Positions 53,976 to 54,802 of a DNA stretch of 64,000 nucleotides are shown piece by piece (the stretch's first letter is position 1; every line of letters begins with the position of its first letter). The notes below the pieces were generated by a model that worked only from the letters and a program-made list of their open reading frames with translations, ran no database searches and was not told where the DNA came from. The DNA comes from Macrostomum lignano (taxonomy: Eukaryota). The position numbers and the translations under genes were made by a program. The DNA lies in NCBI GenBank assembly GCA_002269645.1, contig NIVC01000292.1, positions 124,001-188,000 on the forward strand, read 5' to 3'.

Positions 53976-54802
53976 ATGACTTTCACTGGCAGGTGAGCTT
54001 GCAGACATTTACTAATTGCATTTGAATGTCTGTCTGTCTGTCTGTCTGTCTGTCATTCTGTCTGTCTGTCTGTCTGTCTGTCTGTCTGTCTGTCTGTCTG
54101 TCTGTCTGTCTGTCTGTCTGTCTGTCTGTCTGTCTGTCTGTCTGTCTGTCTGTCTGTCTGTCTGTCTGTTTGTCTGTCTGTCTGTCTGTCTGTCTGTCTG
54201 TCATTCTGTCTGTCTGTCGACCTGTTTCTGTCTGTCTGTCGACCTGTTTCTGTCTGTCTGTCGACCTGTTTCTGTCTGTCTGTCTGTCTGTCTGTCTGTC
54301 TGTCTGTCGACCTGTTTCTGTCTGTCTGTCTGTCGACCTGTTTCTGTCTGTCTGTCTGTCGACCTGTTTCTTTCTGTCTGTCTGTCTGTCTGTCTGTCTG
54401 TCTGTCTGTCTGTCTTAGTGTCTGTCTGTCTGTCTGTCTGTCTGTCTGTCTGTCTGTCTGTCTGTCTGTCTGTCTGTCTGTCATTCTGTCTGTCTGTCTG
54501 TCGACCTGTTTCTGTCTGTCTGTCTGTCTGTCTGTCTGTCTGTCTGTCTGTCGACCTGTTTCTGTCTGTCTGTCTGTCTGTCTGTCTGTCTGTCTGTCTC
54601 TCATTTTCCCAAGCAACCCAACCGCCCCACATCACTCAGAGTGACCCACTTGGCCACATCCCTGGCTCTGGTGCTGCTGCTCATCTGCGCTCTCCACACT
54701 GAGGCGATCGGGTTGAGGCCCTGGAAGTACGACCGGATTTACAGAGATGAGCCTTCGGACCTCGGCGGACTGCTGTGGGCCCGCTCCTATATTCCCCGCT
54801 GA
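53976..54802 (+). CDS. Small secreted peptide precursor, 59 aa, exons 53976-53992 and 54640-54802: MTFTGRVTHLATSLALVLLLICALHTEAIGLRPWKYDRIYRDEPSDLGGLLWARSYIPR
   Basis: Consensus donor AG|GTGAGC and acceptor CAG| match in phase 2. A hydrophobic signal peptide ends T-E-A, codons are GC3-rich, and the frame ends in TGA. Confidence 0.7.
54027..54600. repeat. (TGTC)n microsatellite in the peptide-gene intron
   Basis: Array with TGTCGACCTGTTTC and TCTTAG variants. Confidence 0.98.

Follow-up and report, generated by a model that had tools for sequence, protein, structure and literature searches.

The Weber screen of the flatworm Macrostomum lignano picked its candidates for tail enrichment and for expression varying with social group size, and of the 98 transcripts expressed in the prostate, 22 had further sites of expression, mostly the testis (PMC5977470). 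One of these putative prostate and seminal-fluid transcripts, RNA815_51598, codes for a small protein without homologues in the databases; the gland cells of the prostate express the transcript, and by the criteria of the screen it is tail-enriched and socially plastic. It is a true paralog of the gene that we describe here, which lies at positions 53976-54802 of a 64,000-nucleotide (nt) stretch of M. lignano DNA (contig NIVC01000292.1, positions 124,001 to 188,000 of the forward strand; assembly GCA_002269645.1, Mlig_3_7), referred to below as the window. The two genes have in common the signal peptide, exon 1 and the layout of a (TGTC)n intron; unlike the window gene, the paralog keeps a KK site and a cysteine loop, and on account of its testis expression it is not named in Mlig-pro1-76. 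Predicted secretion, a feature of the Mlig-pro set, is also obtained for the window product by rule-based reading. Outside the flatworm, conopeptide and amphibian skin peptide precursors are known in general to be built, like the family described here, from a signal, a spacer, a basic site and a short Cys peptide, and to be encoded by locally clustered genes; the family differs from them in having no sequence similarity, a single disulfide and an association with male reproductive tissue. Its intact members are also like the cyclic single-disulfide neuropeptides, with a signal, KK and an aromatic-rich C-terminal peptide of ∼21 residues carrying Cys-x9-11-Cys. Unlike those neuropeptides, the family has no detectable homology, no amidation signal and no database conservation beyond one species, and the window copy has no loop.

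The reading that we favor, with a probability of about 0.7, is that the window gene belongs to an M. lignano-restricted family of secreted pre-pro-peptide genes, probably expressed in male glands. Cleavage at KK in the intact members would free an aromatic-rich peptide of ∼21 residues closed by a disulfide, while this copy would yield only a linear 31-mer. As a model the gene is already public, though uncharacterised; the new elements are its family context and the deletion of the loop.

Reading the sequence over 53700-55100 places the start codon at 53976-53978 with A at -3, preceded by ∼22 nt, CCTTGGCAACTGAAAGA, that are kept in all paralogs. The donor CAG/GTGAGC falls at 53992/53993 and the acceptor ...CATCACTCAG/A at 54639/54640, and exon 2 (54640-54802) ends in a TGA stop at 54800-54802 (Table 1). 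Tandem Repeats Finder (TRF) reports an imperfect (TGTC)147 array at 54027-54599, interrupted by GTCGACCTGTTTC and CATTC, that fills nearly the whole intron. The spliced exons give exactly the 59-residue product, and a span of 827 nt with a product of this size requires an intron. An earlier note, made from the letters of the stretch alone, had proposed this gene of two exons with a (TGTC)n intron between them, and every one of its coordinates as well as its translation was reproduced. The same note called the gene hidden and novel, and neither description holds: GenBank calls a 59-residue gene spanning exactly 53976-54802, with its coding sequence (CDS) starting at the ATG at 53976, and the product is the hypothetical protein BOX15_Mlig028075g1/g2 (PAA63208.1, PAA86130.1; UniProt A0A267ENY8). 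The gene is missing only from a bacterial-style list of open reading frames (ORFs). The deposited Mlig_3_7 annotation consists of RNA-seq-derived transcripts only, built with STAR, StringTie and TACO together with BLAT-mapped de novo transcripts, with ORFs called by TransDecoder (PMC5730564); the intron model of the window gene rests on transcript data. The 17-nt coding exon 1 and the shortness of the ORF might invite the view that there is no gene here, only a chance ATG-GT...AG-ORF beside a microsatellite. That view is effectively refuted by the five copies at four loci that retain the frame, splice sites and signal peptide at 30-50% protein divergence, since such recurrence is far above chance, and by the RNA-seq-based models and a de novo transcript of a paralog that is spliced at the equivalent intron. 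The two-exon gene is confirmed as real.

The N-terminus of the product has the marks of a signal peptide under rule-based reading, and secretion is predicted. The n-region, MTFTGRVTH, has a charge of +1, the 15-residue h-region, LATSLALVLLLICAL, has a mean Kyte-Doolittle value of 2.78, and Thr at -3 and Ala at -1 ahead of Ile29 satisfy the (-3,-1) rule. The positively charged n-region, the hydrophobic core and the T-E-A motif that had been proposed earlier are thus all present.

The family comprises five gene copies at four loci of the M. lignano genome. Three of the copies in the assembly are of the window gene itself: the one in the window, a twin on NIVC01001863.1 (locus L002) and a copy on NIVC01000061.1 (L004). 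The twin has the same CDS and a 749-nt intron, and its 3' flank differs at one position in 450 nt. The L004 copy, Mlig033806g1 (protein P0002), encodes 74 residues that match the window protein through ...SDLGG except for V7L and then continue as LEKK-INYHGCKFIRDWGWDCSWINR. The distant members are Mlig028162g1 (P0003, 58 residues), MISNGRLTNLATFLALLLLLIGVFDTEA-IGLKPRMKK-INYEGCIFIRNWGYDCSMLDG, with Gly as its C-terminal residue, and Mlig003555g1 (P0004), which is read as ...GLEKK-ASQRGCYWYHVGLFGWHC..., as is an older fused model containing ...TEAVITDSDDYRALPQDFNGLEKKASQRGCYWYHVGLFGWHC... (P0006). Further loci are labeled L005, on NIVC01001863.1, and L006, which holds the Mlig003555 primer sites discussed below. 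An AlphaFold2 single-sequence model of P0003, with a mean predicted local distance difference test score of 71.7 and helices at 4-28 and 38-48, was too weak and was left unused. In an exhaustive HMMER search of 1.84 billion representative proteins, true relatives came only from M. lignano, with E values against the window protein of 4e-25 for the 74-residue member and of 1e-10 and 1e-8 for the distant members. Among 5.8 billion proteins, word-indexed searches with the 59-residue protein and with the pro-region plus Cys loop, and a profile search for the family, brought up no relative from any species other than M. lignano; the restriction to this species refers to these two protein collections, whose coverage of other Macrostomum species is uncertain. 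Pfam and PDB sequence searches returned noise only. A Babesia MTRAP-like repeat protein (P0005) was rejected as a low-complexity coincidence, its HMMER match being limited to YxDxSDLxGLE.

Family genes cluster within ∼25 kb on NIVC01001863.1 (Table 1), and the next member would lie ∼4 kb past the end of the window if the contigs are collinear. In tblastn searches with all family exon 2 sequences, no second family member was found within the window, and a weak match at 56607-56729, interrupted by stops, was rejected. The cluster on NIVC01001863.1 also contains an annotated 71-residue gene (L005 2523-3231; ∼209.1-209.8 kb, minus strand) for another small secreted peptide, whose six Cys have a knottin-like spacing, C-x6-C-x5-CC-x3-C-x11-C, and which has a weak, sub-threshold Pfam match to Toxin_12 (E = 0.012). 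The signal peptide of this gene is likewise split by an intron, here filled with a 30-bp minisatellite.

The members of the family are held together by their architecture. Every one has ATG, 14 nt and AG/GTGAGC (a 17-nt coding exon 1 ending GGCAG/GTGAGC) followed by the acceptor CAG/A(C or G)TGACC, and the window gene conforms. A phase-2 intron filled with (TGTC)n stands at one position in every family gene, with lengths of 591-897 nt. The signal consensus is M-x3-G-R-x-T-x-L-A-T-x-L-A-L-x2-L-L-I-x4-T-E-A, and the window protein has all 16 of the 28 positions that are invariant across the family. In the intact members a variable spacer and the KK site follow, and then an aromatic-rich peptide of ∼21 residues with two Cys 9-11 residues apart. 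An mRNA alignment of four paralogs shows a conserved block running from about -22 (CCTTGGCAACTG[A/C]AAGA-ATG) through the end of the signal peptide, as well as conserved islands in the 3' untranslated region (UTR); the spacer and mature region are very divergent. Between L004 and L005, dS is ∼0.04 over the 28 signal codons and ∼0.65 over the KK and loop codons, where dN is ∼0.27. This is a conopeptide-like pattern, by which we mean a likeness in evolution with no claim of homology; the counts here are too few for a formal selection test. Within the ∼150 kb examined, TGTC/GACA arrays are almost confined to the introns of the family, the exceptions being an inverted array 460 nt 3' of the gene in three copies and one ∼6.7 kb downstream on the twin contig. 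Simple and tandem repeats account for 15% of the M. lignano genome, the window contains dozens of tandem arrays, and microsatellite-filled introns are ordinary in this genome.

On alignment, the window gene is a homologous, truncated member of this family. It differs from the 74-residue copy at a single position over exon 1 and the first 127 nt of exon 2 and at 6 of 402 positions of the 3' flank, and the two splice junctions read CACTGGCAG/AGTGACC (window) and CACTGGCAG/ACTGACC (74-residue copy). The end of the CDS carries a net in-frame loss of 45 nt, encoding EKKINYHGCKFIRDW, together with 6-9 mismatches in 24-27 nt, compared with 7 in 546 nt elsewhere (Fisher p = 4e-6 to 2.5e-9). Where the 74-residue copy has GGC TGG GAC TGC TCC TGG ATT AAC CGC (GWDCSWINR), the window copy has CTG TGG GCC CGC TCC TAT ATT CCC CGC (LWARSYIPR). 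The deletion takes the first Cys, and Arg stands in place of the second, so that no Cys is left past the signal peptide, and the KK processing site, kept in three other members, is missing from the window copy and its twin. The tail particular to the window copy is GGACTGCTGTGGGCCCGCTCCTATATTCCCCGC, and the segment that distinguishes the two reads GGACTGCTGTGGGCCCGCTCC in the window copy and GGACTGGAGAAGAAAATC in the 74-residue copy. Because all other members (the 74-residue copy and both distant paralogs) keep KK and two Cys, the 59-residue form is derived by parsimony; it arose once the L004 lineage had separated and before the window and L002 copies parted. These comparisons bear on how the mature peptide had been described. 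The absence of a Cys scaffold holds for this copy alone, a derived deletion having taken from it the KK site and two-Cys loop of the family; the absence of an amidation Gly-Lys/Arg is borne out, the product having no C-terminal Gly-basic motif and no KK, KR or RR. The proposed 31-residue mature peptide does not survive, being the family spacer plus 9-12 rearranged residues, a scrambled stub of the real peptide with no conserved bioactive core.

How the tail arose bears on whether this copy still matters. One possibility, which we hold at well under even odds, is that the window copy and its twin are defunct relics in a genome that has recently been duplicated, transcribed or annotated by way of read similarity, with a 59-residue product that has no role. 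The KK site and both Cys were lost through a complex cluster of deletion and substitution, an intact 74-residue copy is present elsewhere, the expression support lacks copy specificity, and a net change divisible by 3 has a prior of ∼1/3. The assembly is also highly redundant owing to the extra chromosomes of the sequenced line (PMC5730564). However, the frame, stop position, both splice sites, start context and 5' leader are intact in two copies, and the 6-9 changes per 27 nt in the tail compare with ∼1.3% neutral divergence; against that background, relaxed constraint alone cannot yield the tail changes. That leaves one complex mutational event, conversion from a donor outside the sampled sequence, or positive selection; no donor sequence for the aberrant tail was found in the ∼150 kb of the window and the loci. 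Within the favored reading of a secreted male-gland peptide family, the window copy and its L002 twin may be either a decaying copy still in frame by chance or a diverged linear variant. A more ambitious version, which we regard as doubtful, sees a flatworm superfamily of hypervariable secreted peptides acting as male-gland (seminal-fluid) allohormones, with a homogeneous leader, signal and (TGTC)n intron and a Cys loop diversifying under sexual conflict, in which the window copy would be a recent neofunctionalised linear peptide from an accelerated burst.

Expression data come from the paralog. RNA815_51598, a de novo transcript of 392 nt, is mapped to Mlig003555.g1, with the in situ hybridization (ISH) pattern 'prostate;testes' (Brand et al. 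2020 Table S11, PMC7336406, supplementary file 16), a pattern credited there to Weber et al. 2018. Its ISH primers lie at L006 9999-10021 and 11107-11129, a genomic span of 1131 nt; once the (TGTC)n intron of 897 nt is subtracted, 234 nt remain, compared with a listed probe length of 235 nt. The agreement shows, from a de novo transcript of independent origin, that the Mlig003555 intron is spliced, and since the reverse primer falls within the Cys-loop codons, an isoform encoding the loop is transcribed. The GenBank model of Mlig003555g1 (L006 11115-11170 and 10001-10057) begins at an upstream in-frame ATG and splices out a 56-nt mini-intron, which deletes the Cys loop to give ...ASQR-VLAQVN and a stop. 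Read without the mini-intron, the gene ends ...ASQRGCYWYHVGLFGWHCPPVK and a stop, and the published reverse primer lies inside that 'intron'. The annotated loop-less isoform may be an alternative or an artefact.

The ISH pattern of the paralog in prostate and testis favors a male-gland secreted peptide over a neuropeptide or prohormone, that is, a product made in neurons, cut at basic residues and acting on a receptor, which had been one of the suggestions of the earlier note. We consider the neuropeptide option very unlikely and find nothing specific in its favor. The small product with a predicted signal peptide would suit it, as would the dibasic KK followed by a short one-disulfide peptide in the intact paralogs, a layout common to several cyclic neuropeptides. 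The window copy, however, lacks KK, the Cys pair and a C-terminal amidation Gly, and the paralogs have KK yet no amidation signal, though P0003 ends in Gly. The mature region is strongly divergent among paralogs, unlike receptor-constrained neuropeptides, neither protein collection holds a relative beyond M. lignano, there is no Pfam match, and the sole expression record of the family is in prostate and testes. Less probable still is an antimicrobial or defensive peptide from epidermal or other gland cells. The predicted 31-residue product has six K/R and four D/E, for a net charge of only about +2, and shows nothing obvious of an amphipathic cationic design; the ISH signal of the paralog is in male reproductive tissue, and the sole weak Pfam match, IBIN (E = 1), is noise. 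The idea draws on the small secreted product, on the pairing of a conserved signal and a hypervariable mature region, as seen in amphibian and other host-defence peptide families, and on the knottin-like secreted peptide gene in the cluster of the family. The secretory-gland option, also raised before, fits the only expression record of the family, the prostate and testes pattern of the paralog Mlig003555.g1.

Several points weigh against the favored reading. The 5' two-thirds of the window gene are the same as in the 74-residue copy, and multi-mapped reads could carry a genome-guided model; P0001 and P0002 have no record from the Logan read assembly. Expression of the paralog in both prostate and testis puts it outside the 76 prostate-limited Mlig-pro candidates. 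Among the rows listed, the full text and supplementary tables of the M. lignano papers hold no expression record of the window gene, Mlig028075, and only Mlig003555 was found; when the 5' 80 nt of the window transcript were tiled against the ISH primer table, no forward primer was found in them. The 3' hexamer is AATACA/GATAAA in the lineage of the window gene and AATAAA in the distant paralogs, and the dN/dS counts are so tiny that the pattern is given without a claim of selection. Signal cleavage, KK processing and the disulfide are predictions from sequence, and we likewise infer the tissue in which the window copy is expressed and any function that it may have.

In the scheme that we propose for the intact members, the precursor would enter the endoplasmic reticulum and lose its signal by cleavage after TEA, a convertase would then cut at KK, and one disulfide would close the Cys loop. 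The peptide would finally be secreted, probably into the ejaculate, by gland cells of the male reproductive system; for one paralog, the sites of expression are the prostate and testis. The window copy, if translated, would give a linear 31-residue peptide made of spacer and remnant. The candidate peptides are INYHGCKFIRDWGWDCSWINR from the 74-residue copy, with or without the disulfide, and IGLRPWKYDRIYRDEPSDLGGLLWARSYIPR.

Table 1. Features of the peptide gene, its flank and the related cluster. Positions refer to the window unless a contig is named.
Feature	Position	Strand	Content or basis
Exon 1, coding part	53976..53992	+	17 nt, ATG ACT TTC ACT GGC AG = M T F T G + 2 nt; ATGACTTTCACTGGCAG
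Phase-2 intron	53993..54639	+	647 nt; GTGAGC donor, C-rich tract, CAG acceptor
Exon 2, rest of signal peptide (R6-A28: RVTHLATSLALVLLLICALHTEA), then first residues past predicted cleavage TEA/IG	54640..54723	+	Translation, signal rules
Exon 2, spacer/pro-region ..RPWKYDRIYRDEPSDLGG	54724..54769	+	Same in the 74-residue copy, there followed by GLEKK and the Cys-loop peptide
Exon 2, rearranged C-terminal remnant LLWARSYIPR and TGA	54770..54802	+	Aligned to the Cys-loop end GWDCSWINR of the 74-residue copy
Probable 3' UTR	54803..54915	+	Conserved block ATCCCAGATGCTGACAGTGCAAATG; 16-nt repeat GGGCAGTCGTGTTTAC (1.9 copies); GATAAATACACTGC at the position of AATAAA in the paralogs
(AGAC)167 array, reverse complement of the intron repeat	55259..55934	+	TRF; ∼460 nt downstream of the stop
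59-residue twin gene	NIVC01001863.1 178.1-179.0 kb	+	Locus annotation
Mlig003555	NIVC01001863.1 192.1-193.3 kb	+	Locus annotation
Mlig028162	NIVC01001863.1 201.4-202.3 kb	-	Locus annotation

The 16-nt repeat of the 3' UTR is present in 1.9 copies in the window (54827-54857) and in ∼5 copies in the 74-residue copy (L004 10841-10915). Further downstream, the (AGAC)n array stands next to all three copies of the window gene and is not found beside the more distant paralogs. It is probably outside the gene; the idea that it is the intron of an inverted pseudogene was rejected, as tblastn found no family exon beside the array on either strand. GTCT/AGAC is the core Smad-binding motif. Between the gene and the array, at ∼55150-55235 on the minus strand, lies a tRNA-like stretch, GGGGCCGCAGCCTAGCGGTCTAAGGCGGCGCTCTGATC...GGGGCTCGATTCC, which is single-copy in the window, drew no call from ARAGORN or Rfam, and may be a degraded tRNA-derived element. 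Upstream of the peptide gene is a TCF25 ORF of 638 residues (49910-51826; Pfam Tcf25, E = 4e-95), which occurs verbatim on NIVC01000292.1. The TCF25 gene beside the 74-residue copy (L004 3694-5004) is annotated with 436 residues, compared with 638 in the window and the twin, a size difference that implies that the homeologous region of NIVC01000061.1 is rearranged or differently modelled; the poor alignment of the upstream 1 kb of the peptide gene on that contig is consistent with this.

Elsewhere in the window, a DOCK-like gene contains a tandem duplication of ∼5.63 kb (28860-39400), seen in paired 300-residue ORFs at 30096-30998 and 35729-36631 with SH3 and DOCK_N matches and in paired minisatellites at 28862-29408/34496-35042 and 32036-33063/37667-38695. 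Near-perfect, very long tetranucleotide arrays, (TATC)303 and (AGTC)131, occupy 1297-2509 and 3158-3683 and adjoin a single-exon ORF for a major facilitator superfamily transporter (3680-5716, minus strand). At 57550-57579 on the minus strand, Rfam gives a match to the histone 3' UTR stem-loop that stays below threshold (20.6 bits against a gathering threshold of 34, E = 0.043).

These results add no new coding element. They place a known gene model in a new context, that of a clustered, one-species family of small secreted peptides with a disulfide loop. The members have the signal peptide and the microsatellite intron in common, and at least one of them is expressed in prostate and testis. 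The window gene is ordinary for the M. lignano genome, and this copy may be defunct. For genome scanning, the lesson is that a "mature peptide" read from a single paralog can be a deletion remnant. The intact 74-residue and loop-deleted 59-residue copies form a natural comparison. Sexual conflict in hermaphrodites is studied in M. lignano as a model, and a peptide family that is compact and diverges fast would provide convenient candidates in work on seminal-fluid function.

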